Assembly: GCA_965285935.1 (NCBI GenBank) | Contig: CBDIWN010000008.1 | Span: 248,001-312,000, forward strand | Length of the DNA: 64,000 nucleotides | Direction: 5' to 3' | Source: Ophelia neglecta | Taxonomy: Eukaryota | Part shown: positions 18,101 to 54,021 of the stretch, in pieces | Layout of the letters: each line of letters opens with the position of its first letter | Position numbering within the stretch: position 1 is the stretch's first letter | Made by a program: the position numbers and the translations under genes | Notes under the pieces: model-generated | Told to the model about the DNA's origin: nothing | What the model saw: the letters and a program-made list of their open reading frames with translations, nothing else | The model's database searches: none

Positions 18101-19030
18101 GGGTAAGAGTCTAGCGGGGGATCTAGAGATTACCAGGGGTCTCTGGCGGGTCTAGATGCAGTCAGACCCCTTGAGGTTTTCAGAGCCCCTTGGCGGATCT
18201 AGAGGTAGTAGGTGCCATTTGGCGGATTGATAGGTCATTGGAGTACCCCGGCGGATCTAAAGATTGTCAGAGTCACTGGCCGAAGCATGGGTCTTCCGAC
18301 ACCAAGCTGATGAAGTTCTGGCAGAGACATTTCATAGATCCCGATAGCGTTATTAGCTTTTAAATAAATACAAACGCTTCTTTTTGGGACTTGATACTAA
18401 TACAAGTCTTTCCTGAATTGTGCCCGCACCTCCCACAACCACCCCAAACCCCCGCGCCGTTTTCAACTAGTGGGAAGCATCCGGCCCTGGATTCGAATCA
18501 GGTCTACGACGCACTGGTTTACATGCAATATTAATATTAATGTATGACTTTAGATTCCAAGGGCGGTGATAGGAAAATTTAATGTGTAATTCATTGGAAC
18601 GGACACCTTAATATGTTATTAGTAGTTTGGCTAATTAATTAATGCCCTGATAATAATGTTTGACAAGCAATGTGCCGACGTGTACAGGTCGTCTTTGTCT
18701 TGTGTCACGATTTTGGTGGTAACTTGTGAACATATATAGTTGACACCACGACGGCAACTGATTTTAAAAGCATTCGTGACCAAAAAAGTCACAAGTGTGC
18801 TTCAGATGTTTTCTGACTCTATTTCCATAATAATCACATTTTAACTTTACGGGTTAACAATAAGTTAAAACAACTAGGAATACTCAATACTGCCGCGGCC
18901 AACACTCCGGCGATCGAGTAATACCAATAAGTTCATAAAAAGAACGTGTCTACTAACCTGTCTGAGCAGTAATTCTTGTAAGAAAAACACTGGAACTGAC
19001 CAGCAAACAAATGTAAATGGTAGAAGACAT
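985..19030 (-). CDS. Receptor-type protein tyrosine phosphatase with F-type lectin, EGF-like and FN3 ectodomain (copy 1; 25 exons, ~1227 aa)
   Basis: Manually spliced GT-AG exons with consistent phases. Ectodomain: 19030-18958 (signal peptide [24 protein letters not shown]), 17081-16929 (EGF-like), 16050-15835 and 15098-14874 (F-type lectin: LAVDG..CAHP..WWYVDL..ILNR..GRYVTI..LCEV), 14561-14472 (Cys-rich), 10453-9953 (EGF repeats), 9828-9484 (FN3). TM and juxtamembrane: 9196-9085 (TM), 8916-8822, 8593-8391 (acceptor least certain). PTP D1: 7082-6995, 6646-6576 (DYINAS), 6438-6399 (YVATQG), 6137-6040 (FWSMVWQ), 5909-5781 (KCAQYWP), 4522-4377 (WPD..VHCS), 4268-4133 (AGIGRTG..MVQT), 3741-3592 (QYIFIY). 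PTP D2: 3115-3016, 2883-2810 (DYINAV), 2549-2415 (DFWRLVYE), 2295-2158, 2044-1890, 1418-1283, 1059-985 (stop). Total 3684 nt, open frame. Confidence 0.9.
3592..7082 (-). other. PTP domain D1 exons of copy 1 (predicted catalytically competent)
   Basis: WPD loop (LSWPDK), signature [11 protein letters not shown] split across exons 4377/4268, and Q-loop MVQTLPQYIF. The KNRY motif reads RDRF. Confidence 0.88.
10475..10861 (+). repeat. Left terminal inverted repeat of the Academ element
   Basis: Reverse complement of ~13968-14345, with a few substitutions and one short indel near the tip. Confidence 0.92.
11251..11874 (+). CDS. N-terminal fragment of Academ protein (CxxC/His zinc-binding motifs), truncated by internal deletion
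   Basis: 207-aa ORF with LCIFCQ twice, WHKMCY and [13 protein letters not shown]. It runs out of frame at about 11850. Confidence 0.7.
   Translation: MMDPVVTLKRSSPVDCSLCIFCQTPSVGGILSKASDHGLATAKHAASIRRKLRDSKNIVVIDRLENVLNSDEKQSIVWHKMCYAHFTDKSKIERLQKPQAVDSKQVGASCSSSGNRHSLRKCVEPVNWKLCIFCQTVSKARLTSVMTKQLSDQIIQASSLDYKIGLRLAGVIDLIAAEAKYHLTCLRLFTRSTNKNNQDSQNYVSPM
11927..13756 (+). CDS. Academ XPG/FEN1-like nuclease plus CXC Cys-cluster region (609-aa open frame)
   Basis: Acidic motifs [26 protein letters not shown] and LTGCDSTS (H3TH), with C-terminal [27 protein letters not shown]. The frame stays open upstream to ~11852 ([20 protein letters not shown]). Confidence 0.82.
   Translation: MYNHCRGSTRVHNEATKSRQKRDNDDEMSLLTAFMGFGVFASVSPDSLQNLVTKDLATEEIQHSLLCAKELGQEQVNTFVADRMIVPEEGNKPDVTIHASLQRNNAKTFASLYDVVKDSKAKETKIIFKADRNVLQRLVTAYEAGRPVDLPAVLKHELLPVPISIAEMNGALRTGNKSVLLEKLTEDITCPEAIELHDTSSCLIIDGQALVVSLGRPDNAVTFGDLADTYVRAVLRAGYKYQRIDIVFDRYRKETIKGGTRTRRTKLARPIRRPVESRDVPLPKNWTNFLSLPDNKADLAHFLSEELCIQAPDDKEIVVAGGFRDELAVRSSKTCTDLAQLKATHEEADTRLVLHAVHSQFNTVVVSSRDTDVLVLLVSHFPRVQCEHLWMLSGTSKKRQYIPIDAVFNNLPTDSAPHLLPFHALTGCDSTSYFANHTKRSSWKMFIEHHHLLNNLGIGDLTEETILSSEKFVCRIYGVHKTDSVDAARHVLFSKTGKPEALSPTSDALRFHLMRVHYQTMVWRNAHCGVPELPAPVNMGWKHGDSGLQPILMSLSPIPGSCLEMISCACQKQCKTRHCKCRKSGLRCTAMCACHQQIDDQTPYCMNTD
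13968..14345 (-). repeat. Right terminal inverted repeat of the Academ element
   Basis: Reverse complement of ~10475-10861. An additional degenerate copy of the internal TIR motif (actaatttgcatatttatga) lies at ~13835-13960. Confidence 0.92.
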
Positions 19031-22715: not shown

Positions 22716-24854
22716 GCTGACATGCTTATTATATAATGGGCTCTGATGGATATCATTTTATCACCATCCATAGCCCCTGACGGATATTTAGGTCTAGTGT
22801 AGGCCCAATAAATAATGCAACTGATTCGATAAAAACATTTACACTGCGAAAAAAACTTCTTGCTTACTCAATTGTCCTTTTAATACGCACACCCTGTATC
22901 AAACGTATGTTTAGACACGAGGGCAGTATGTTTTATGTACAAAACCGTTAGCGTCAGGCAGGCCATTTTGCTACTTACGGTCAGAAAAAGTCAGGATGGT
23001 AGATTTTGCATTTTGCATCCGTTGTAGGTCAGTGGTTTTTGTAATGTCTTAACTTCGTAGGCTTAGGGATCGTTGACGTTCTTGCGTTGTTTTTGGGATG
23101 AGGGCTGAACCCCCCCCCCCAACCTTTCCCATGATCTGTTTAACATCCAGATGATAAATACCCAAAATATGTATGTCCACAAACTTTTAAAAAATCCTGA
23201 TTAATGTTTTTTTACTTTTATGTACATGGTTTTCGATGGCTTAACCCTATTCTCTCCAGATCCCTTGAAGTAAACAAGAATATGAAAGCGGCACTCGGGG
23301 TATCTTGACAGTGACTTTGAAAACCACAATACAATTCTGTGATAATAAGGTCTAGCTGCACCCATTAGAACTGTCCATCTGATTTTCTGATGTATTGTAC
23401 TCTTAATTTCAGGTGATTATGTTTAAGCTTGATCAAAAGCAACATCCATTGATGTGGTACACAATAAAAATCACGAATTCTGAAGTTTGTTGAATTTGGT
23501 TTTAAAGTCAACATGGTGTATAATACATTATAACACAATATAGGCAGTGAGGCAGAATGTCGTTCCGTTGCAGGCTATGATCATTTGCGGCTATGTAGAG
23601 ACTGCTAACAGTATTTTCAGACGCAATCTATGCATACAGTAAATGTGTTTATTATGCAAACAATCAGGGACGCACTCGACTGATTCCAGTGGCGGATTTA
23701 GAAGTTGTGGGAGTCCCTTCTTTACTTTCCCTCCAATATGTACCAAATAACTAGTAAATGGTATTAAATATCGTCAATAACTTATCTGGTGGAGGTCCGG
23801 CAATGTTCCCCACGGCATTTTACATTTTTAATACAAACGTTTCGAATACACCTCCCATGTGAGAGATGACACGCAGTCCATGCCTTTAAATGTATAGCAC
23901 TCTCCGGCCCTTAGCAGTTTTCTAGCAGTTGTAGCTACAGGCCCGAGATACCACCGAGGTTCCTAACGTACATAACTTCAGCTATGTGTTCAAGTTTAAT
24001 GGTTGTCTTTAGACTGGGCTTGTGGTGAACACTGGCAGAGGTAGTGTAGGTTGTGGCTAAGGATTAAACCCGGATAATTGTGAAGGGCAAGCAACGTTTT
24101 AAGGCATGCTTGAGTTCACGATTTTGGTTAATCTTTCAAGTTACAGCTTTAACACGATCGCCGATTTCTGTTACCAATTTTGTAGCATGCAATACAAATA
24201 ATTCAAACTGCTCCTGAAATATTGTAGGACTCTATTCAGATTGTTTATTACCGTTTCAGCAGGTTGAAACTAAATAATTTTGTCTGTATTCTGCTATAGA
24301 ATTACTCATTTGCACTTTTTGCATACCCAAGAACATATTAATGAACATTTATCTAAAGCTTTTTGGTGCATTTATTGAATGGAGCTCTATATACATGTTA
24401 TTTATAGAATATATCCAATAGCACATTTGCATAATTATAGTATATAAGAACATATGCCGAATTTCATGTCCAAGGTTAACTCAGTTAACTTTATAAATGT
24501 CCTATTTAGAATGCACATGTGGTGTCCAACGAAAATACTGATTAATGAAATAATTATTTCCCACAATTATGTCAGCCTAAACCACAATACAACATATGGA
24601 AAGTACATTCAGGCTGGAATATCAATCTTGCAGTCTGGATCGAGTATATATCATTGGATGAGACTAATATATGATTTCATGATATAGATGTTATATGCTA
24701 GTCCTGTTAGTTCAAGCAGACACCTTGTACGCAATGCAATAAAGGTAGCACTATATTGAGCATAACATACTACTAAGGGTTGAATTGACTGCTCAAACGT
24801 AGATAACATTATCGGGTTACAATCAAAATAATATCACATGTGTAAGTCGTTTGT

Positions 24855-27800
24855 TTATCTCTTGGCGCCCTCTTGCTGGTCTATTTCCTCATAATCATTA
24901 TTTGTATTTAGTTGTTCGTACATTGGATTTCCCTCCTCAGTCAGATTAGCTGTAAAACATAATAAAACATTCCTAAATCCACACTTCACACTTTCATAAA
25001 TCATGGACATGTACACGGAACAAATTTCCAAATGAAAAATTAATGACAATGCCCATATTGCAATATGAAGAACCGCCAGAATATATTTGTACTTTAGGGA
25101 TAACCAAGACACACGCTCAGCCCATATTTCAAATCGCCTATATGACGATACGAAAGAGTTGTTTAATGTGATAACAGGACATTTCTCGTCCACATGTAAT
25201 TCACAGGTTGTCAACACCATTATATTAAGGTATAAGGGTATTAACTAAGTCTTGTATTTCCTCAATATGTCACATGATAAGGACACCATGTGTGTTAAAT
25301 ATGTGCTTATTTGGTCTAACAACGATTAGCCGTAGATCGAAGAGGCAGAAAAACCAGATTATTAAACCAAAGCTAATATGTTTTTTTAGCTCTCACCATA
25401 GCCGGCATGTTCCGGGGACGGTTTCTCATATACGTTGTATTCGGATAATTCAACTTCCTGTGTGGCAGGAACCTGGTCTGGATTTTGTTGCGATAATTCG
25501 TTCGTAAAAAGTTTCACCTGTCGTACCCTGTATACAAGAAAACACATGATCTGAGAATGCATAAAGAGTATTAGAGCAAATATTTGCACCCAACACTACA
25601 GTCAGTCACTACATAGCTATCTATCATATCTAATATATCTACTAGACTGGACGTAGAGACATTTGGACTAATGTACACAAACGTTTCAAATATTGTTTTA
25701 AATAAAAAAAGGAATTTGCCAAATTGCCTTAAGGAAAATAACAAGAAACCTTCCATTTTAGACGTCACTTACTTGACTATAAGACAACCAATGACGGTGG
25801 CAACAGTGGCAACTATTGCAACAATTCCTATGACGATTCCTGTCAATGCGCCCGGTGACAGAGACATAGTTTGCCTTGGTTTAAGGAGATTAGCTACATT
25901 TGAAATTATATCACGTCAAATAATGATACATTTACATGGCTTCAAATCTCCCCGGACATGTATTGACACATATATCCCTGCTTATAATGTAATTTTCCTA
26001 TTGACCAAATACTAGCATACTGTATACATACTAGCGGCAAATGTGAATGCCCCTTAATATACCTACTGGTAAGCTGATATCAAATAGAAGCGCGGGGCTA
26101 GCCTGCTATAATATACCCTACATTGTACTCTACAAAGGGATTTGTGCACCATTAAAGATATTTTACTGTATGCCAATTATTGTCCGATGACATATTTTCA
26201 AAGCATTGATTTAACTATATTCAAGATCAAAAGAAATAATTTGATTCACATTAATGTCATAACTCTGTAGCTATATTTAAAGGAAAGAGAGTCGATTAAG
26301 TATCTAAAATTCAGACACCACTTATTATGATATCATTATCTAAAGACAATGTAACGTATAGTCTACATTGGCAATAAGAGTATCATGACGTTTCGGCGAC
26401 ATTGCTAGCAAAGATAGTTTAATTAGTTTAACAATGCAATTAAATTCAATAACCTTGATTTTGTGCAGCCAAAGTAGTAGCGAACTCAGTCGTGTTTTTG
26501 AGACAGTCTTCTTTTATTCCGTTCAATTGTCGATAAATCTTTAATATGATCCGGTATGTAGAATTGACGGCCAGATTTGTCAATGTTTTGTCATACTTCA
26601 TAGCAATATTATCTTCTTTGATTTCTATTGTAAGCGATTCAATTTCTGCCCCATTTGCCTCTGAAACGGTGATTTTGTAGCCAAATACAGCCGCTGTATT
26701 TAATGGAATAGCTTTCACGTGTGTCCATTCTATGGTTATCCTGTCAGCTTGAACATCGGTAATGCTGACCTTGTTTATGTCCGGATACTCAACATAGGCT
26801 GTTCAAATAAAAAAGCAAAAAGTAATATTTTTCATTAATACATAAACATTATTGTGATTACTTTTATTAGATAATATTGATCATAAGCAATAAAACTGAT
26901 TTTACATACCTATAGACTGATTACAATGATCTCCAGCGTACCATGTTTTGTACGGAGGCAGATGACAACCGTTACTACATGCTCCACTGTCTTGATGACA
27001 AGTCGTTATGTTATCAACAGCCTTACAGTTACTACTACATAGTTGGTCGCAGGTTTTACCGTAATAACCACTGTGACAGACGCACGCCCCGCTATACCTG
27101 TCACATCCGGGGTTACTATGCTCACCAGAACACTGATTATTACAGGTATTATTGCAGAATTCGCCATAAGAACCATCGTTACAGCCAAAATTACAAATTC
27201 CACTCCGCTGGCTGCAAGAACCAGAGCTAGTGACTACATGACAACCAGTGCTACAGTTTTTCTGACACTGGTCTCCAAAGTAAGGGTCCTGACAGCCACT
27301 CGTGCAACGCCCATCAGTGACAGAACATGACCGAGCATTAGACCCCTGACCAATAAGGCAATTCATACTACATTGGTAGTTACAGTTTATACCGAAATGG
27401 TTTTTGTCACATTCTGTAACGTAGATTATAATCAGTAAGTGAACATTTGTATTGGTTTACCTTGAAACTGGATGTTACTGCTAAGGCATTGTGTATTATA
27501 TAATCTGCAGTGAAAAGTGAAATGATTTGTTAAATGTTAAAACAGTAATGAGCTTACCTTGGCAGTCCGGGTACTTTGGGTAGTTCTCGGGGCATGTACT
27601 GCAGCCAATCATGGGATCGCATGACTGGCATCGGTTTCTATCACAAACTAGAATAACAGGTGAATAGTTAACAAAAATAATGGGCCTTATCTTTTAACAG
27701 AACTAAATCTCAATTAATCGCTTTCACTCTTAATTTTCTTCCCGTGCAAGCCTAAGATCCAAGTAATTACAGTGGGTTGACGTCAAGTTCAGGAGTGAGT

Positions 27801-30800
27801 CTGTATTTGTGAATCACCATCTATAATCTGACTATTGATTTATTAATTTAGAACATTACTTTCAATAGTGCCAACAAGGAGTGGGTGCGTTGGTAAATGT
27901 ATCTCTTATGCAGCAACTATCTATTCAAAATGGCCACAGTCCAATTCAGAAACATACATTCAAAGATGAAAATGCGTTCGGGTTTTAACATACCAACAGG
28001 TTTGTATCCGTGAACTATCACCTCACACAGGTTAAGGTACTGCACTTCATCCCCGCCTGCATTTCTGATAATGGTGACGTATCTGCCGATGACGGGCGAG
28101 TAACAATATATTGTGTCGCTTTCTGCTTCGGGAATAACTCCTGTATAATTCTTACAGAGACTTGTTAAATCACCGTCTGTCACGGAACCAACTCCAAGGC
28201 GAAAATAACCGGTACGTTCTGTGAAAAGGTATTCCTGGTATTGTATAAGGCCAAAGTGTGCATTATCACAAGTTTGTGTAGACATATATGTAAATAGCTC
28301 ATCATTGAATATTAAGCTGGAATTTCGTAAAACTAATTAGAGCTTCCGATCGAACAATTTTCTTAGCGATGTTTACACGAGTGGATGACGTTTTAATTAA
28401 TGATATTTCTAAATAGAATCAATTCCAATAAAATTAATTGAAAATTTAATTACATAAATTCCTGTTATTCCTGTTTATAAACAGGAAATACCTCTTTACC
28501 TTTCCACCACATATTCACAACGTATGTTAAGTGCGTTAAGCACCGTAGCAAACAATTTGAAAAAACAAAAGAATCGGCCTCGCGATGGTTTCCCCGCAAC
28601 TGTTTTTGTATTTTATTTGTATACCGTACTCAAGGCAAACTTTCATATGACTAGTTTGCACTTGCCTTCAATCTGTTCATTAAATGAAAGCTCGAACCCA
28701 AGTTACGTATATTATGTTATAATCCGAAAATATATTAGATATTTAAGTAACAATACTAGCACTGGTAGCCTATTGGTGAACAGCATACACATGAAGTACA
28801 ATTTGGAGTTTATTTTTTGTCCCATGTGAACAGCGTGGGATAAAAGAAAACAATCGCGCATTAGTAATGATGTGATTAATGCTATCATCATGCGTAGATG
28901 TTTCGGTAGATGTTTCATATTTGTCTCTAGATCTACCAGTAATTTTTCATTTTCTTACTGTAAGATGGAGAATGGTCTCTGTTTAAGATGGTGACACTAA
29001 CAACTGTGTAGATATCCTTTAGATCGACGTACCACCAGGCTCTCTTCCCATCTCCAGCATCGGGATGTGCACAATTCGCTATCCATGTAGAATTTTTGCC
29101 ATCGACAGCCAGATCCGCGGTTAAATCACCATATTTTCCGCTTTGATTTGCCGGTCTTCCCTTCGCTATATTACCTGTTAATACAAAATACTGATAAAAC
29201 AGGCTGGTCAGGGATCCTTTAATACTATGCTATCGTAAATGATGAAATCACGTTTTTAGTATAAACTTTATCTTTACTCTGGAACACTTATGAGAATAGT
29301 AACTACTTGATGTCTCAATGTTTCACATAAAGACTGCAACAGTTCATTACATGAATGAGTGGACAAATATATCACTGGAATTGAGAAACACCAAAGGATT
29401 ATGAAAGAACTTGACGGCTTAAACTTAAACACTAAATAAGGATTTAATCCAAGTGAATGTTTTTTAGATGTCGGGTATCATCATTCCGGCATTATATTAA
29501 AAGAACAACCTCAGAGGCTCTTGCAGCCTCTATGATTCCGGGCCCACTAATATAAACAGACATGATCTGTCGATGCTTATTACACAAACCTTTCTATTGT
29601 AGGGCATAAATATGTATTCGCATTTTACGCCGGTGTGACCGGGGAGGAAGTTGAGGCATTATTTGATAGGCTAGAGTTAGGAATAGTGCAGGATGTATGC
29701 AAACATTGTTTCGGACATGTCGATCCCCCCCCCCCCCCAGCCCCACCCCCATCCCTGCCCGTGCCCCACCCCAAACCCCTTTCCCCACGCCCATAATAAT
29801 AATTTAACTTGTCATTAGAAATTTACTTTATATTATTAAAATGAGGACTATGGAGTTTTTGTTTTGGCCCACATAAATAAAATCCTGAACCTTAGCTTGT
29901 CACAGCGATAGTATACCTCAGGGGATTGTTTCTTTGTAAATGTTGTGCGAAATGACGTAATAGTTACAAAAAAATTGATTAGTACTCAGTATAACACTTT
30001 TAAAGATACTCTATGTTGACAGTTTTAAATGCTTCCAAATGAATATTAACAGAAAGTTTTACCGAGGTTACACCCAGGCCCGTCTCTCCGTATGATGGAA
30101 GGGTCATCCCATTCACATTCACCTCCATCGATACAATCTCCTGTCATCTGATCACAACCCTTGGTACAGTGACAGGGAAATACACAGCCAGTAGTATTCC
30201 CAAACCTACACAGACCTGAGGGAAAAAGTCGAGGGCAACATTTATTTGTTGGAATATTAGACGAAACTTTCGCACTTTTTCGCGTATCCGGTAATTATTT
30301 AACACCGATATAAACGTTATTTGATTACCCTGAGTGGAAGGTCCGCCCGGTTTACTTAACCTATCCGAAATCTGTGAGTCCCACAATCTTGAAACACAAG
30401 GATTTTAAGTCCAGCGTTCTAAAAATTCTAGTATGTTTGGAATCAGTTCACGAAATCCTGGTTTATTACGTCCGGGGACACCAAGACATAAAACCCTATG
30501 GTATTAAACGTGACTGATTAAATACACCAGTATCTCGTCATTCTGACTATGCACGCATGCTCAAGATAATTACAGAGGCTTTTAATGAATTTTATATAAA
30601 TGTAGGGCCCTCCTTGGCAAGCAAGATTCCCAGAAATGATAGGAACCCTCTTTCCTATATCAACTCTTCCATAACTGAATCCATTTGTTTAGAAAAGGTT
30701 ACCCCTGAAGAAATTACTAAAATTAGTATGTCTTTCAAACATAAAAGTCCTGGTTGGGATAATATACATGCTAAGGTAGTAAAGAATTCGTATTTGCATT

Positions 30801-33800
30801 TTCTCCCTGTGCTTACTCACATTTGCAATTTATCTCTATCTAAGGGCAATTTCCCTGATGAAATGAAAAAAGCCAAAGTTATACCACTATACAAAGGTGA
30901 TAGTTCAACAAAAATTTCCAATTATAGACCTGTATCTGTACTGCCTCTGTTTTCAAAAATTCTTGAACGTTTAATGTATAATAGAATCATATCCTTTATA
31001 AACAAACATGATATCTTGTATAAATATCAGTTTGGGTTTAGGGAAAAGCATGGCACAAATCTTTCTCTTATGTTGCTTGTAGATAAATTAATTAATGCTT
31101 TGGATAATGGGGACAAAGCAATTGGAGTTTCTTGGATTTTTCGTAGGCATTCGATACAGTGAATCATGCAATACTATTGAGCAAATTATTTAAATATGGA
31201 ATACGTGGTATATCCTATGAATGGATTCAAAGTTATTTGTCCAAACGTACCCAGTTTCTATCATATGATAATGAGAATTCTAGGGTCCAATTTATTACTT
31301 GTGGTATCCCTCAGGGGTCAATTCTAGGATCACTTTTATTTATATTATATGTAAACGACATCTCAAGTGTATCAGAAATTATATTTCCTGTGTTATTCGC
31401 AGATGAAACAAATGTCTTTATTACTGGCAAGAGTATCAACAAAATGGTTGAGAGTATGAACACTGAATTGAAGAAAATTGTAATTTGGTTAGAAGTTAAT
31501 AAGCTATCCCTCAATATTAAAAAAACTCATTAGATGGTGTTCAGTTATAAACGGTTGAGTATGCCAGACAATTGTAATTAATTTATAGGTGGTGAAACTG
31601 TTCAAAAAGTGAATTCGACAAAGTTCCTGTTTTTTTTTATAGATTCGACCTTGTCTTGGTCTGACCATGTTAATATGATCAAAAAGAAAATAAGTAAAGG
31701 CCTAGGGATAATTTGTAGGGCAAAGAAATTGCTTCACAAATCAACTCTTAAAACTTTGTATAATACATTTATACTTCCATATTTTATGTATTGTATTGAG
31801 GTGTGGGAGGGAGCTACTCAGGAAATCTTGAATCCTCTTGTCAAGCTGCAAAAGAAAATCTTAAGAGTGGTATCTTACTCATCATACAGGGCAAGTACTG
31901 GCCCTATATTCCAGGAATTAAAACTTTTGAACTTGTTCAGTATATACAAGTACAAAATATTATTGTTCATGTATAAAGTTCACAATAATCTATTGCCAGT
32001 GATCTTTAAGGATCTATTCTGTAAAAATAGTGACTTTCATGCATATGAGACCCGTCGTTCTAACCTGTTGCGTGTGCCTAAATATAATTTAGCAGCTTCC
32101 CAGAAGGGTGTATGCTATCAGGGTGTTGTTATCTGGAACATAATATCAGCCTCTTTAGTGCCTGACATAAAAATTTCATCATTTAAACAGAATGTAAAGG
32201 CCTTTCTTCTTGTACATGGTGATTTGTGACATAATACTACTTTTTTACTGTCCTTACTTTGTCATACCAGTTCTTTGGTGTATGCATAAGATATTACATA
32301 TAGTGTTTTTTTTTCTTTTTTTTGGGGGGGGGGGGTGGAGGGATATTTCCTTTATTATGTTATATTAATGTTGTTGTTTATTCCTAGTTAAATTTCGTCT
32401 TTTTTTTCTCTGCACATTGTATGGTGAAACATTAATAATTTAGTAGTTATATCTGATGTGGGGGTACATACACCAGTGTGGTGTCCTTCTCCCTTTGTCA
32501 TGAAATGTCATTAGGCTACTGGTATATGATTGTATATCATTTGTACATGTCATAGTTGTTTCTTTTCATAGCAATAAATTCAATTCAATTGAAAAACAGA
32601 AATATACCACTGGCTCTCTGATATGTGCACGCCAGACATGCAAAACAGCTACCTCGCCTTCGCTTCTTATGACTGAAGGCTGTTAAAGCCTTCATCATTA
32701 CTAATAAATTAGTTAATTTAGTTATTACATTTTGTTAGCACTACTATGACGTATGCGTTTTAGATATGAAATAATTTGTATTTCTCCGCATTGGTCAAAA
32801 CATAATTCTATTTGGAATTATCAGGCGTTATCTCTCTTATACTCTTAAATCTCCTTGTTCATAGAAGTTTGTTTACAAACACATATTATTCTGGAGATAT
32901 AACCATATATCGGCTTTTACTGTCAAAAATTCTGTTTCAAGATGGCTAAATCGTGTTATATTTAAAGGAGTTAAAAGTTTTTATATCCATTTGCTGCTGA
33001 TTTATCAATGGAAAAGAAGTTAAAACCCAATAATTAAAAGCAGTTCCTTCATATGTGCCATTTTATCCGCAATATAATAGAATCCTCTGAGCTAAAATGT
33101 TATGAAATGCGGTACTTGCCTACTTCAAATACAAAGCGAGGTTCCTTAGCCATGCAGTTCAAACATATAAAGCGATTTATACCAGGTGTATTCAGGCCCC
33201 GTGTGTGTATAGCCTACAGACATGCAAACAATCCGGGACTAACGAATGCTCCTATGGACGCGCTTGGGTAAGTGCGGGATCTAGAGATTACCAGGGGTCT
33301 CTGGCGGGTCTAGATGCAGTCAGACCCCTTGAGGTTTTCAGAGCCCCTTGGCGGATCTAGAGGTAGTAGGTGCCATTTGGCGGATTGATAGGTCATTGGA
33401 GTTCCCCGGCGGATCTAGAGACTGTCAGAGTCACTGGCGGAAGCATGGGTCTTCCGACACCAAGATGATGAAGTTCTGACAGAGACATTTCATAGATCCC
33501 GATAGCGTTATTAGCTTTTAAATAAATACAAACGCTTCTTTTTGGGACTTGATACTAATACAAGTCTTTCCTGAATTGTGCCCGCACCTCCCACAACCAC
33601 TCCAAACCCCCGCGCCGTTTTCAACTAGTGGGAAGCATCCGGCCCTGGATTCGAATCAGGTCTACGACGCACTGGTTTACATGCAATATTAATATTAATG
33701 TATGACTTTAGATTCCAAGGGCGGTGATAGGAAAATTTAATGTGTAATTCATTGGAACGGACACCTTAATATGTTATTAGTGGTGTTGCTAATTCATTAA

Positions 33801-34179
33801 TGCCCTGATAATAATGTTTGACAAGCAATGTGCCGACGTGTACAGGTCGTCTTTGTCTTGTGTCACGATTTTGGTGGTAACTTGTGAACATATAAAGTTG
33901 ACACCACGACGGCAACTGATTTTAAAAGCATTCGTGACCAAAAAAGTCACAAGTGTGCTTCAGATGTTTTCTTTCCATAATAATCACTTTTTAACTTTAC
34001 GGGTTAACAATAAGTTAAACAACTAGGAATACTCAATACTGCCGCGGCCAACAATCCGGCGATCGAGTAATACCAATAAGTTCATAAAAAGAACATATCT
34101 ACTAACCTGTCTGAGCAGTAACTCTTGTAAGGAAAACACTTGAACTGACCAGCAAACAAATGTAAATGTTAGGAGACAT
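24855..34179 (-). CDS. F-type lectin/EGF/FN3 single-pass receptor with short tyrosine-motif (ITAM/NPxY) tail (copy 2; 10 exons, ~650 aa, intact)
   Basis: Exons: 34179-34107 (signal peptide), 30215-30063, 29174-28959, 28218-27994, 27647-27558, 27413-26910, 26798-26454, 25893-25773 (TM GALTGIVIGIVAIVATVATVIGCLIV), 25527-25397, 24949-24855 (stop). All GT-AG with consistent phases, 1953 nt open. Tail: ...EYNVYEKPSPEHAGYANLTEEGNPMYEQLNTNNDYEEIDQQEGAKR. Confidence 0.88.
30559..32591 (+). mobile_element. 5'-truncated CR1/L2-group LINE in intron 1 of copy 2
   Basis: RT motifs YRPVSVLPLFSKILE, QFGFR, AFD, GIPQGSILG, LFADET and WLEVNKLSLN, spread over three broken ORFs (30557-32229). 3' end is AATAAA followed by TTCAA repeats. 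The empty site in copy 1 (~17417-17435, gcacgcat|aaaaacagaaat) shows no TSD. Confidence 0.88.
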
Positions 34180-37100
34180 TATCAAAGTGCACGTACACAC
34201 ACCTCCGTAAGTGTGTTTATTGTAAACACTATGCCAGATAGAAGTGACTTACAGGTATGCCTACATTAAATACGAATATTAATAATGATATTTACTTCCT
34301 GCTTTCCGAGCGATCGCCTGAAAGTAAATACACCAGTCTACACCCCGTTAAACAAACATACTCAATGGCCGAAGGATTACGTGTTTTTAATACATAATTG
34401 ATAATGTTGTATGATCGTAAAAATATTATATATTGAAATGGAAGTCCCGTGGGTTGTATTTCGAACGCTTTATTACAATATTAATTCAATCGGATGATAT
34501 TTACCGATGGCAGTGACGATTCCATATTCATTAGTTGAATATAAGGATATAATCTGTAAGCAATGAAAATACACATCATGTAAAATACAAATAAGGGGAC
34601 TCAAAGTCGGGGCGAACTTTAAGCAAATCAAATCAAAGATATACGACGGGAATATAACGATGATTAAGTCTACAGACATATATAAAACCATGAACCGCCG
34701 GAGCAGGGACACGCACTGCTAGCCGAAGTTAGCAACATTACTACCCCATTTTTATAAGTACTGGTATTTTAATACGGCCGTTACCTACATTTATGTCGAC
34801 TATAAATACACAGACAAACAAATAGAGCAAGTGTGTGTGTCGATAAATCATAACATAAATGCAAATTATAATATGAATGGAGATGGCGGTCGATAAAGTC
34901 TATAGGCACATAGAGTCATAGGCGGTCTATACATACAGTGACGGATCGAGGATTTCAGGAAGGCGGGGGGGGGGGGGGGATGCTGACAAGGCAAATGTCT
35001 GGATTGTCCCCGTTACCAACCCTCTGAAAGCACCTTGCGTGGGTCCAGAAATAAGCCCTGGTAAAGGCCCACTTTTTGGCCCCCTGGTTGGGCCCCCTGC
35101 CCCCCCTTAATCCGCGACTTTTGCTACTGTGCAAAAATGTATTTCCCGGGGCGGCCTTCTCCCCCCGTCTTAGCTGATCCGGCTTCACCAGCGGGTTTTT
35201 TCCGATAGTCCAATGTTACTTTTTGAGAACAACTAAATCGGATATATAGCCATGAAGTTTCTAAATCCCAATTCTAGATTAAAGGGCTATTATTCATTTA
35301 GTATTGATGAATGCGTAAGACATAGCCAAATGAGGCAAAGTCAATGATTGTAAACACTTAAATAATGTCTTCATTGTTATATGAATAAACGCACCCCAAT
35401 GTTTCATTTTACCATCACGGCAAAGTTTTGGTATTATTCTCTTGGATTTGAACCATTTCTCAAGAGTGTGCCCGTTTAAAGCGTTTAAAGCATTCCTATC
35501 AGCTAAATATCTAGAGCGAGGCCTGTGATTTCTCAATAAGTTTGTCATAATAATTAATGCTATTCAATATATAATATCGCAAAAGTGCAGTGTTACAAAA
35601 ATAATCCAAAGGAGCATTTATAATTCGTGCCAGGGGTAGCGGCAATTCGAGTAGGGGGGGGGGGGGAGGGGCTCTATTTCTATCTATATAGTTGGGGAAA
35701 CCTTATTTTTCGTGTAAACCCAGTTAGAATCAGATGGGGGTGGGGCCTTATGCTAATTGGATGGGGGGTGGGGCCTTATCCTGATTACGCATCGACATTC
35801 CGATGCTCTACGCCAATATAATATTAACTCAAAATGAACCGAATATTTCCTAAAATTCTAAATAGGGTGCTGCTATTACATGCGGGGCGGACTACTTGTA
35901 CTCCAAACTCTCGGAATCACCCTTTTTAATTGACCGTGGTTCGTAGATTCTGGAACAACGATGGTGCCAGGGGAATTCAAGCTTTTATTTTTCGTGAATC
36001 GGCTTTTGACATTTTCCCATTATTCAAGATGGAGGGATTTCGTTTACTGTGACTTGGGAATGTGCCGTTTAATTTGCCGGGAATATAAAATCCCTATTTC
36101 CATATATATATTTCGGGATTCGGGAAATACTTATTTTTCAAACCGGGAACAGGGAACGGGGATCTCATAGCTTCCCCTCTTGCACCAATAAATGGTGATA
36201 TTGATGGTAATAGCAATATTTCATTGAGATTTTCTTGCATATAGAACAATTTAACATTGTATTTAGGCCTACAATTAAATCATTCAAATTTAAAAGCGTG
36301 GGGGGGGGTAGTTGTGTCTTTATGTTTATTCGGGGGGGGGGGGGGGGGCGGTGAACTTTGTTCTTTGTTCCATTGGAAGTTATAAAACGACGCTAGCATG
36401 AGAGCCACGCTATAGATATATAGATAATGAACACTTTACATGTTTACAAATTAAAAGTAAAGGTCATGAGGTCAGAAATTTAATAGATGCTAGAATTGAA
36501 CATTGATGGAAACCGTTGTAAAATGAGGCATTGTGTATACAATATAATTAAATATTTATCTTAATCACTCAACAAAATAGTAGAGCTTATATAATGTGTG
36601 TGCTACCATAGCTAATATATATATATTGCTGGTTTCATCTTATAATGGTTGGAACAGATGTACAAGATTAACTTTATTTCATACACATGTATAATAGACT
36701 AAACTGGGACCAAACCATTTTGGCACTGTATATTATGTATATAAGTGACCATTTGGACATGCCCATTCATAGCCTTTATATACAAATTTTGTAAACTTTA
36801 CAGGCAGCCGGGCATTGGATATTTTAAGTTAAACTAGGTGAAACAGATGCACGACAAGAAGAATTAATAGACATTGAACTCATTCCAACCAAATAGGCAC
36901 CATCTTGTTGTTTTGCATCGGCTAAAACATCAATTATAATGGTTGTAGTATTTTAAATCTTATAGTTTTCTGCATGGAAGATATACATTATGCGAGGAAG
37001 GCATCACATTAGTGCCACTCAGGGATTTTCCATTAAAAATCTGGGGTAGAGGGTGGTATGGAAATATTCAGAATTCAGGGATAAGGGGGTTAATATTTTA

Positions 37101-44900: not shown

Positions 44901-45071
44901 CCTCTAATGCAAAAGTGCAAACTATTCCAAAAAATCTTCAATTCAATACAAACAGCTATAACCATGCTAACCATTTAAATGATATCGTTTTATTGTTGAT
45001 TCTCCAATGTCTGATTTCGGATGTTGGTCCACGTATCAAAAAAAAGCATTTATTTTCAGTTTCTTTCAGAA

Positions 45072-46423
45072 ATGGATGGCAAAACGTCTCATGGTCTGCA
45101 AACAGCCGGTGGAAATAAGGAGTCCCCTATTCATTTAGACGAAGATAAGCCACTGCACGTTGCTTGTCATTGGAAAAGTGATGACGTAGTTAGGCACCTT
45201 CTACACAAAAGGGAAGATATAAACAAAAAGGATGCGGAAGGCAACAGGCCGCTTCATACTGCTTTAGACACAGACTACTGTTCCAATTATAGGGATGTTG
45301 TGGAAGTTTGTTGGAAGCCGGGGCCGATTTTCACGCCGCTGGTAAGCAAGGACTTACACCACTACATCTCGCATGCTATCATGGAGACGAGGACGTGGTA
45401 AGGTTACTTTTGGATAGAGGCGCTGGTGTCAACGTCCTTGCTAAGTGTAACTATAGCCCATTGGTTTGTCTATTGAATAACAATTGTTACAGGCCCATAT
45501 TTCCCTGTAGAAACAGTACAAATTTTAGGGAACAGCTTTGTAGCGTCCTTTTAGTTTTACTGGATTCTGGAGCTAATGTAAGAGCGGTGTATGATAAAGA
45601 CAACACTCCGCTACACTTTGCCTGCCAATGGGCAGATGGGGATGTTGTTAAGATACTGATATCACACGGGGCGGATGTGAATGCTAAGAACACCAAAGGG
45701 AACACGCCCCTGCATTCCCTTGTATTAGTGGATCACAGTAATCACAGCGATATGGCTGATACAGCAAATCAATTAATAACAGCTGGCGCGGATATTAATG
45801 CGAAAAATATTGAATGTAGAACTCCTTTAGAGGAAATGTGTGGCGAAAAAGGTTATTATTACATCGATTTGGTGGAGTTATTTGTAGCAAACGGAGCTAA
45901 CGATACCATGTTACTTGCTGCATTTTTCAAGGTACGTTATATGGGAGGAGCGGAGCATGTTGATCGTCTGTGTGAACACGGAATTCAGTTTCATACAGAC
46001 AAAATACAAATTTGTCCAAATACTTTGAGATCTATACCTATCTCAACTGTACTGTGCCGGGCCGGTATGGACAGTACTGACATGTTATATAGGAGTGTTT
46101 TTTGTGTCCTTTTAGAGGGGAGATCAGCTAACCGCAGTGTGGTTGTCCAACTGCTGTCCTGCTACTTCAGATTTGCAAATGCTTTACAGCCATACCAAAC
46201 TACGCTGTTTACTGACATGATAACTGCAGTAAGACAATTTGTCCACGCTGATCATGTGAACAATTTGATTACGGAAGATTTGTCTATTGGCCATGTATGG
46301 ACCTTTTCCTTGAAGATACTCACTGTACGCGCCATCAGAAGGAGGCTCTATGAGGTCGGTGGCCCAGTGTCTATTCTGCCCAGAATTAAGGCACTCCAAG
46401 AGGCGCTGCCACCTGCTCTATAG
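45072..46423 (+). pseudogene. Single-coding-exon ankyrin-repeat + SOCS-box (ASB-like) gene, frameshifted
   Basis: Ankyrin repeats KPLHVAC, RPLHTAL, TPLHLAC, TPLHFAC, TPLHSLV with GADVN/GADIN, and a C-terminal SLKILTVRAIRRRL...IKAL..LPPAL. One T is missing at ~45306-45309 (GTT TG TTG), joining ORFs 45021 and 45308. A TAG follows LPPAL directly. The ATG at 45072 lies just after a pyrimidine-rich AG acceptor. Confidence 0.75.
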
Positions 46424-48242: not shown

Positions 48243-48396
48243 NNNNNNNNNNNNNNNNNNNNNNNNNNNNNNNNNNNNNNNNNNNNNNNNNNNNNNNNNN
48301 NNNNNNNNNNNNNNNNNNNNNNNNNNNNNNNNNNNNNNNNNNNNNNNNNNNNNNNNNNNNNNNNNNNNNNNNNNNNNNNNNNNNNNNNNNNNNNNN
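48243..48396. other. Assembly gap (154 N)
   Basis: Run of N. Confidence 1.
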
Positions 48397-52160: not shown

Positions 52161-54021
52161 TGCTTATGTCAGAAATAGGCAGGATGGTATATCTTGCATT
52201 TTGCATTCGTTGCAGGACAGTGGTTTTTGAAATGTCTTAACTTCGTAGGCTTAGGGATCGGTGACGTTCTTGTTGTTTGGAATGAGGGCTGAAAGCCACC
52301 CCCCCCCCACCCCCACCCCACCTTCAAACTTGTTCTGTTTAACATCCAAATGACAAACACCCAGTCCCTTAATGTATGTATGTCCGCAAACTTTAAAAAA
52401 TCCTGAATAATGTTTTTTACTTAATTGTACATGGTCTTCGAGGGCTTAACTATATTTTCTCCTGATCCCTTAAAATAAACAAAACAATATAAGCGGCACT
52501 CGATGTATCTGGACAGTGACTTTGAAATCACAATACAATTCTGTGGTATTAAGATCTAGCTGCACCCATTAGAACTGGCCATCTGATTAACTGGTGTATT
52601 GTACTATTAAATTCAGGTGATTATGTTTAAGCTAGATCTAAAGCAACATCCATTGATGTGGTACAAAATAATAATCACGAATTATGAACTTTGTTAAATT
52701 TGGTTTTAAAGTCAACATGGTGCATAATACATTATAACAGAATATAGGCATTGAGGCAGTATGTCGTTCCGTTGCAGGCTATGATCATTTGCGGCTATGT
52801 AGAGACTGCTAACAGTACTTTCAGACGCAATGTATGCATCCAGTAAATGTGTATTTTATGCAAACAATCAGGGACGCACTCGGCTGATTCCAGTGGCGGA
52901 TTTAGAAGTTGTAGGAGTCCCTTCTTTACTTTTCCTCCAATATGTGCCAAATAACTAGTAAAAGGTATTGAATATCGTCAATAACTTATCTGGTGGAAGT
53001 CCGGCAATGTTCCCCACGGCATTTTACATTTTCAATACAAACTTTTCGAAGACACCTCCCTTGTGAGAGATGACACGCAGGCCACGCCTTTAAATGTAGA
53101 GCTCTCTCCGGCCCTTAGCAGTTTTCTAGCAGTTGTAGCTACAGGCCCGAGATACCACTGAGGTTCCTAACGTATATAACTTCAGCTATGTGTTCAAGTT
53201 TAATGGTTGTCTTTAGGCTGGGCTTGTTGTGAACACTGGCAGAGGTAGTGTAGGTTGTGGCTAAGGATTAAACCCGGATAATTCAAGTTACAGCTTTGAC
53301 ACGATCGCCGATTTCTGGTACCAATTTTGGAGCATGCAATACAAACAATTCAAACTGCTCCTTGAATATTGTAAGACTCTATTCAGATTGTTTATTACCG
53401 TTTCAGCCGCTTGGAACTAAATAATTTCGTCTGTATTCTGCTTTAAAATTACTCATTTGCTGCGATGTAATACTTTATGCATACTCAAGAACATATTAAT
53501 GAACATTTATCTAAAGCTTTTTGGTACATTTATTGAATGGAGCTCTATATACATGTTATATATAAAATATATCCAATAACACATTTGCATAATTATAGGA
53601 TAAAAGATTATATCCCGTTTTTCGTGTCCAAGGTTAACTCACTTAACTTTATAAATGTACTATTTAGAATGCACATGTGGTATCCAACGAAAATAGTGAT
53701 TAATGAAATAATAATTTCCCACAATTATGTCAGCCCAATCCCCAATACAACATATATGGAAAGTACATTCAGCCTGGAATATGAAATTTGCAGTCTGGAT
53801 GGAGTTTATATCATTGGATTGAACTAATAAGTATATGATTACATGAGATATACTGTTATGCTAGTTCTGTTAGTTCAAGCTCACAACTTGTACATAATAC
53901 TATTAATGGTAGCATAAATAATTAGCAGTACATTGGTAAGGGTGAAATTGACTGCTCAAACTTAGATGACATTATCGGGTTACAATCAAAATAATATCAC
54001 ATGTGTAAGCGGAGTCGTTGT

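Follow-up and report, generated by a model that had tools for sequence, protein, structure and literature searches.

Signalling through the ITAM (immunoreceptor tyrosine-based activation motif) serves the immune receptors of vertebrates, and Draper in the fly, as a core switch. To our knowledge, only a small number of ITAM receptors have been described in invertebrates, and hardly any of them has a defined ligand-binding head. Here, a candidate of this kind is described on the minus strand of a 64,000-nucleotide stretch of the Ophelia neglecta genome (contig CBDIWN010000008.1, positions 248,001 to 312,000), which is referred to below as the window and corresponds to G000:C16:248001-312000 of the 762-Mb assembly. 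The gene is predicted to encode a receptor with an F-type lectin head, and its cytoplasmic tail carries a canonical ITAM which is formed only when exons 9 and 10 are joined.

An ITAM is defined, for membrane proteins, by the consensus Yxx[LI]-x(6-8/9)-Yxx[LI] within the cytoplasmic tail (PMC9546547), and ITAM-Syk signalling has been experimentally shown in an oyster (PMC6994640). In Draper and MEGF10, the tail combines NPxY with an ITAM, with Src as the writer, Shark or Syk as the reader and the participation of GULP (PMC8092387). The receptor described here resembles Draper, CED-1, MEGF10 and Jedi-1 in being single-pass, in its putative EGF repeats of the MEGF/SCARF type and in a short tail with NPxY and ITAM/YxxL motifs, for which a Src-family kinase would be the expected writer and Shark/Syk and CED-6/GULP the expected readers (PMC8092387). 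It departs from that group in that it is without an EMI domain, carries a single Fn3 domain and, as its head, an F-type lectin, has its NPxY overlapping the second half of the ITAM, and exists in about 100 tandem copies rather than as a single-copy gene. The spacing of the Draper ITAM is also longer than the canonical x7 seen here, which places the tail nearer, by its geometry, to the ITAM chains of vertebrates.

The vertebrate ITAM chains (FcR gamma, DAP12, CD3 zeta, Ig alpha/beta) share with this tail the form Yxx[LI]-x7-Yxx[LI], a distance of 11 residues between the tyrosines and a short acidic tail; there, however, the motif is usually carried by an adaptor chain of its own, whereas here it lies on the ligand-binding chain and overlaps NPxY, and no homology is claimed. 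Oyster CgIgR and Hydractinia Alr are transmembrane receptors of invertebrates whose ITAM tails have been predicted or tested, and their genomes encode Syk/Shark (PMC6994640, PMC9546547), Alr also forming a large tandem gene family. Their ectodomains are Ig-like instead of F-type lectin, EGF and Fn3, and the Alr tails are highly diverse, whereas in the present family it is the tail that is best conserved. The hemITAM lectins Dectin-1 and CLEC-2 have a glycan-binding head wired directly to Syk-type tyrosine signalling, as is predicted here, and the KIR, Siglec-5/14 and CEACAM pairs place near-identical ectodomains on opposite signalling ends encoded by neighbouring genes. Unlike the present family, these are C-type lectins (type II) or Ig-type receptors, and their inhibitory arm is an ITIM (immunoreceptor tyrosine-based inhibitory motif), where here a whole PTP domain is found in a twin gene. 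The tails of LRP1 and the LDL-receptor family, finally, contain NPxYxxL, in which a PTB-docking motif and a YxxPhi share one tyrosine; LDL-A and YWTD modules are absent from the present gene, and its conserved Y-x-N-L 11 residues upstream is not a feature of the LDL receptor family.

The ITAM as read across intron 9

Exon 9 (25527-25397, minus strand) begins after ...ttgtatacag and terminates in CCG GAA CAT GCC GGC TAT G, after which the intron opens with gtgagagctaa. Exon 10 (24949-24855, minus strand) is preceded by ttattatgttttacag, with a ttttacag acceptor, and reads CT AAT CTG ACT GAG GAG GGA AAT CCA ATG TAC GAA CAA CTA, continuing AAT ACA AAT AAT GAT TAT GAG GAA ATA ... AGA TAA, with the stop codon at 24857-24855. 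The codon divided by intron 9 (25396-24950, minus strand, 447 nt, gtgaga...ttttacag) is that of an alanine, G/CT. The spliced tail reads ...SEYNVYEKPSPEHAGY-A-NLTEEGNPMYEQLNTNNDYEEIDQQEGAKR up to the stop or, with a longer upstream context, ...EYNVYEKPSPEHAGY-A-NLTEEGNPMYEQLNTNNDYEEIDQQEGAKR.

Four tyrosines stand in the spliced tail: Y1 (YExP), Y2 (Y-[AV]-N-L), Y3 (G-N-P-x-Y-E-Q-L) and Y4 (Y-E-E-I). Joining the two exons yields YANL-x7-YEQL, a canonical ITAM that lies C-terminal of the transmembrane helix and in which Y2 and Y3 are 11 residues apart (24909-25400, minus strand; YANL at 25400-25397 plus 24949-24942, then the seven-residue spacer, and YEQL at 24920-24909). NPMY (24929-24918) overlaps YEQL, and YEEI (24893-24882, minus strand) follows five residues downstream. 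The first YxxL is visible in neither exon 9 nor exon 10 alone, and a frame read through intron 9 stops after GYGES. The sequence-only reading had claimed just such an ITAM, split by an intron, hidden from a view at the level of open reading frames (ORFs), lost on retention of intron 9, overlapped by NPxY and followed by YEEI, and direct reading of the sequence bears this out.

Conservation of the junction and of the tail tyrosines

The 30-residue peptide of exon 10 has at least 96 matching places in the assembly, and copies of the tail exons were located on C16, C7 (87-91.7 and 104 Mb), C2 (112.4 Mb) and C5 (52.8 Mb). Seventy of the tail-exon loci were fetched; 66 hold both exons 9 and 10, and these cassettes comprise 56 unique tails. 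Exon 9 ends in a tyrosine codon plus G before gt(g/a)ag, with the same donor and phase, in 66/66 cassettes, and an AG acceptor stands in the same phase before NN AAY CTN in 64/66, although intron 9 itself is between 96 and 777 nt long. The split codon encodes Ala in 27 unique tails, Val in 26, Glu in two and Gly in one, the Gly copy having lost its acceptor. Since the position of the junction has stayed constant despite the turnover of the intron, it is highly probable that a junction of the 25397/24949 type is used, at least in the family.

The tyrosines and their contexts are conserved as well. Y1 is present in all 56 unique tails, within N-x-Y-E-x-P (YExP in 44/56), as is Y2, with N at +2 and L at +3 each in 52/54 scored tails and YxN in 54/56. 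The second half of the motif has G in 54/54, P in 51/54 and Y3 in 49/54, followed by E (52/54), Q (51/54) and L (47/54). Y4 is found in 52/54, with [ED], [EDN] and I/V at the three positions after it in 54/54 each, and Y[ED][EDN][IV] in 54/56. The distance from Y2 to Y3 is 11 residues in all 54 scored unique tails despite variable spacer residues, and the spacers of three and five residues, like the C-terminal end, are freely variable. The full pattern Yxx[LI]-x7-Yxx[LI] occurs in 53 of the 66 cassettes and in 44 of the 56 unique tails. Natural variants have N or I in place of Y3, YEQF in place of YEQL, V or S at Y2-2 (an ITIM-like context) and T at Y4-2.

Some parts of the sequence-only reading need narrowing in view of these counts. 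Of the two tyrosines in the upstream YNVYEKP to which it drew attention, the second is the invariant Y1, and the first is C, F or L in paralogues. The overlap of NPxY with the ITAM stands, as read in NPMY, and its conservation is weaker than that of the rest, with the Asn in 40/54 and a complete NPxY in 34/56 unique tails. Likewise, the acidic, Src-type YxxI is kept family-wide as Y-[ED]-[EDN]-[IV], and the strict YEEI is not.

Purifying selection acts on the motif residues of the tail across the family. A pooled Nei-Gojobori comparison of 1872 pairs, with a synonymous divergence (dS) of about 0.95, gave a ratio of non-synonymous to synonymous divergence (dN/dS) of 0.29, which divides into 0.086 for motif codons and 0.52 for the remainder, a split that is descriptive, as the motif columns were picked after viewing the alignment and the pairs are non-independent. 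Independent of that choice of columns is the synonymous codon variety at kept residues, such as Y1 (TAT 22, TAC 31), G6 (four codons), L13 (five Leu codons) and I22 (three). The tail motifs are also more conserved than the ectodomain, because a subfamily at C7:89 Mb, with the exon order EGF, Fn3, transmembrane, exon 9 and exon 10, keeps the same motifs while its Fn3 exon is only 28-30% identical to that of the window gene. Taken as a prediction from this pattern, the tail tyrosines are quite probably functional in some way.

Exon 10 copies without exon 9 (L002, L006) were considered as last exons of phosphatase genes, that is, as an old C-terminus of a receptor tyrosine phosphatase. This was rejected; their intron 9 contains a non-long-terminal-repeat retroelement, with reverse-transcriptase-like open frames of 427 and 365 aa, which displaces exon 9 beyond the fetched stretch.

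A tandem-SH2 kinase in the genome

A scan of the genome for SH2 domains recovered an intronless ORF of 685 aa with the order SH2-ankyrin-SH2-tyrosine kinase (G000:C8:29348739-29350796; L072:742-2796, minus strand). This order is the architecture which separates Shark from Syk (PMC9546547), and by its predicted domains the ORF at C8:29.35 Mb is a Shark-type kinase. Two other loci were considered as Syk-type readers. The tandem SH2 at C5:62.67 Mb was rejected, being PI3K p85, and that at C8:14.98 Mb was not taken as Syk, its adjoining kinase exons being what we take to be Csk-like from our own reading and not from a Pfam scan. The scan also showed expanded clusters of SH2-domain ORFs at C2:96.4-96.7 Mb, C12:55.5 Mb and C5:3.3-3.6 Mb.

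Proposed mechanism and competing explanations

From the sequence, the gene model, the conservation and purifying selection across the family and the Shark-type kinase gene, we propose a receptor with a lectin head and, as its tail, a phosphotyrosine platform built around a true ITAM, which would be written by a Src-family kinase, read by a kinase of the Shark/Syk type, bound by PTB adaptors at NPxY and opposed by a phosphatase twin; its expression, phosphorylation, partners and outcome are predictions. The receptor would be clustered when its lectin head binds a glycan ligand, and a Src-family kinase docked at the acidic pYxxI would phosphorylate the tail. Once doubly phosphorylated, Y2 and Y3 would recruit a tandem-SH2 kinase of the Syk/Shark type, and the NPxY core could additionally dock PTB adaptors of the CED-6/GULP type. 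The output would be an activating or engulfment signal, which the neighbouring phosphatase twin, its ectodomain 85-90% identical, would oppose on the same ligand. We consider this scheme as a whole to be evenly poised between right and wrong. Tandem-SH2 reading as the mode of the tail falls slightly short of that, and phagocytosis as the output is a tentative and rather unlikely proposal.

Several points weigh against the scheme. The three public sequencing runs that contain the stretch come from one sample, and their contigs at 24400-29300 span introns and exons alike; one contig of 300 nt sits inside intron 9, and no exon-exon joint, that of 25397/24949 included, is found among them. These runs, the only public ones, are therefore genomic DNA, and the expression of the gene and the use of the 25397/24949 junction stand as predictions. 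Secondly, when orthologues were sought with the Fn3 exon among 1.84 billion representatives, nine matches were returned, the best of which is a tail-less fragment of 203 aa from a 1.3-kb Logan DNA contig that ends at the transmembrane exon, and a word-based search with the ORF containing exon 10 gave no candidate. Since neither search returned a tail-bearing orthologue, the conservation rests on paralogues of one genome. Some of these are perhaps allelic: several tail cassettes on C16 (963 kb) are identical or near-identical to cassettes at 90.5-91.1 Mb of the chromosome-sized C7 (L003/L008/L010, L028/L029), and for C16 either a second haplotype or a segmental duplication of very recent date would be an explanation, so that 96 is an upper bound for distinct loci. 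To these may be added the descriptive nature of the dN/dS split and a 2-kb non-long-terminal-repeat retroelement with reverse-transcriptase-like ORFs in intron 1 of the window gene (30558-32592; plus-strand ORFs 30557-32229) that a paralogue is without. Nor is a conserved tyrosine tail by itself proof of ITAM reading, because NPxYxxL and YxxPhi are also endocytic signals and Y-x-N fits Grb2.

This last point leads to a first alternative, in which the tail holds endocytic or sorting signals only, with NPxY bound by the PTB domains of Dab2, ARH or GULP and YxxPhi by AP-2, for constitutive clathrin uptake of a lectin receptor of the scavenger type without Syk/Shark signalling. Position +3 is hydrophobic or Pro after each of the four tyrosines, NPMYEQL shares the NPxYxxL form with the distal motif of LRP1, and the EGF repeats weakly resemble those of the scavenger receptor SCARF1 (E 0.0097). 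However, no motif residue is kept less often than the Asn of NPxY, whereas the spacing of Y2 and Y3, the Asn at Y2+2 and the acidic residues at +1/+2 that are typical of SH2 ligands are retained, and paralogues with a tyrosine phosphatase in place of the tail suggest a phosphotyrosine logic. Sorting as the sole role therefore appears unlikely to us; sorting and ITAM roles are not mutually exclusive.

Equally unlikely in our view is a docking platform read one tyrosine at a time, in which Crk or Abl would bind YxxP, Grb2 YxN, PTB domains or Shc NPxY, and Src-family SH2 domains YEEI, the ITAM spacing being a by-product of packing. Each of these single-SH2 contexts is conserved, as the counts for YExP, YxN and Y[ED][EDN][IV] given above indicate, and several variants lose Y3 or swap L for F with the other sites retained. 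Against this reading stand the invariant distance of 11 residues across a variable spacer and the Shark-type reader encoded in the genome.

It is quite improbable that the window copy is silent, or a decaying young pseudogene within a large tandem array that has inherited the motif without using it. The missing RNA support and the retroelement in intron 1 would suit such a copy, and decay does occur in the array, where a third copy changes frame in its lectin and transmembrane exons; in the window gene, however, 10/10 exons are open, with canonical splice sites and fitting phases. That the motif matches by chance, in a stretch rich in Tyr which an imagined splice has created, has a negligible probability: reading motifs across many possible junctions can yield some, and among 200,000 shuffles of the 75-residue tail composition an ITAM (x6-8) arose in 0.36% and an ITAM with NPxY in 0.0085%, but these single-tail figures are superseded by the family-wide conservation, in which dozens of diverged paralogues repeat both the junction and the motif, with synonymous changes at kept codons.

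Significance of the receptor family

The literature searches returned no description of a receptor family with F-type lectin, EGF and Fn3 domains and ITAM tails. What distinguishes the family is an x7 ITAM that is better conserved than any other part of these lectin receptors, a large set which is duplicating rapidly, in a genome which contains a candidate Shark-type kinase gene and phosphatase-tailed twins. Tentatively, and with more doubt than confidence, it may be viewed as an invertebrate paired-receptor system of about a hundred tandem genes, in which near-identical, fast-diversifying F-type lectin heads are joined either to the ITAM/NPxY/YEEI tail, for activation or engulfment via Src and Shark, or to a PTP domain, for inhibition. 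If so, kinase recruitment versus phosphatase activity on one ligand would set the response, and the system would be an independently evolved analogue of the vertebrate activating and inhibitory pairs, in which the receptor itself contains the eraser. Provided that this reading of the tail is correct, the family would offer a tractable system for the origin of activating/inhibitory pairing and of glycan-based non-self sensing outside vertebrates. More generally, signalling motifs split by introns escape ORF-level annotation.

Gene model and ectodomain

The complete gene, built exon by exon, has 10 exons on the minus strand and a coding sequence of 1893 nt for a type I receptor of 630 aa, with the domain order signal peptide, EGF, F-type lectin, Cys module, EGF repeats, Fn3, transmembrane helix and a tail of about 75 aa. 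All junctions are GT-AG, the intron phases are 1-1-1-1-1-1-1-2-1 and none of the 10 exons contains an internal stop. Phases and frames were verified arithmetically for each exon, and the Pfam scans were run on separate exon pieces.

Exon 1 (34179-34107) holds the start codon and the signal peptide, with a phase-1 donor, and this peptide is kept in paralogue copies in the window at 19030 and 62305. An earlier candidate for the start, the ATG at 34851, was dropped because paralogues carry frame-breaking indels and a stop there, and the conserved signal peptide at 34179 was used instead. Exon 2 (30215-30123, phase 1/1) encodes one small six-Cys EGF-like unit without a Pfam match. Exons 3 (29174-28959) and 4 (28218-27994) contain the first and second halves of the lectin domain, and are followed by a short Cys-rich linker module in exon 5 (27647-27558) which is kept in paralogues. 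Exon 6 (27413-26910) contains about four putative EGF repeats of the MEGF/SCARF type, and exon 7 (26798-26454) a fibronectin type III domain (Pfam fn3, E 1.5e-5, above the cut-off). The juxtamembrane stretch and the transmembrane helix (GALTGIVIGIVAIVATVATVIGCLIV) lie in exon 8 (25893-25773), which has the phase-2 donor AA/gtaagt. The membrane-proximal tail in exon 9 contains Y1 (YEKP, 25430-25419), Y2 (TAT, 25400-25398) and the G of the split codon (25397), and exon 10 adds the CT of the split Ala, NL, TEEGNPM, YEQL, NTNND, YEEI and an acidic end. Beyond the stop codon, AATAAA occurs on the minus strand at 24371-24376 and 24244-24249, about 480 and 610 nt downstream; these are plausible polyadenylation sites, the frequency of AATAAA in the window being no higher than expected by chance. 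The third copy has AATAAA at matching distances (53529-53534, 53391-53396).

The head of the receptor is, as predicted from its domain matches, an F-type lectin of the fucose-binding type. Exon 3 matches Pfam F5_F8_type_C (E 4e-7, 30.6 bits against a cut-off of 28.2) and, among the PDB structures, FBP32 (E 3.7e-10) and eel agglutinin (E 1.4e-5); exon 4 matches FBP32 as well (E 9.3e-7). The CxH, WWxVDL and NR elements of the lectin exons align with known F-type lectins, CAH/NR standing against CTH/NR, and, in the fucose site, the His and the first of the Arg residues are kept, with the second Arg at the exon 3/4 junction, outside the alignment. The suggestion of a lectin-tipped receptor is thereby confirmed and made more specific. 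In exon 6, about four C-x-x-G-[YF]-x-G-x-x-C units are present, with sub-threshold matches only (EGF_laminin, E 0.043, and the weak SCARF1 match mentioned above). No Pfam match to an EMI domain was obtained in any exon piece scanned singly, exon 2 included. Of the kinship with Draper/CED-1/MEGF10 that had been proposed, a similar tail logic is retained, with NPMY overlapping YEQL, and family membership is not, because the gene is without an EMI domain and has a lectin-plus-Fn3 architecture.

Neighbouring copies and the phosphatase twin

A further copy lies 13 kb downstream on the same strand, with ectodomain exons that are 82-91% identical to those of the ITAM-tailed gene and match them exon by exon (lectin 16105-14857, EGF 10475-9951, Fn3 9832-9479, minus strand). 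Its 3' part differs: the transmembrane exon (about 9212-9003) is another one, and Pfam Y_phosphatase matches follow at 6704-6543, 6207-6007 and 5930-5745 (minus strand). On these matches, the downstream copy (16105-5745) is a predicted receptor tyrosine phosphatase twin of the ITAM-tailed gene, so that the same head would be wired either to a tyrosine tail or to a tyrosine phosphatase. The ITAM-tailed gene itself ends 75 residues past the transmembrane helix, contains no PTP exon and is not a receptor tyrosine phosphatase. A BLASTP comparison of its exon 9 with the juxtamembrane exon of the twin gave no alignment.

The third copy (58166-54025, minus strand) has the same tail, with exon 9 at 54687-54559 and exon 10 at 54114-54025, reading ...EPVGY/A/NL... 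with an ITIM-like V at Y2-2. Its tblastn matches shift frame in the lectin exon (58166/58110) and in the transmembrane exon (55073/55011), and the copy may be a pseudogene, or there may be assembly errors at these places. About 2 kb past its tail, an extra cassette of exons 9 and 10 (52085-51431, minus strand; ..ETSLY / NLTEEGNPMYEQLNTN..YEDIDMKE) stands without ectodomain exons of its own and could be what a deleted gene has left behind or else an alternative 3' end.

The window as a whole has a GC content of about 0.37 and the appearance of animal DNA with introns and retroelements, with a run of N at 48243-48396. Between the second and third receptor copies, the plus strand at 45021-46423 contains long ankyrin-repeat-like open frames, which are unrelated to the tail.

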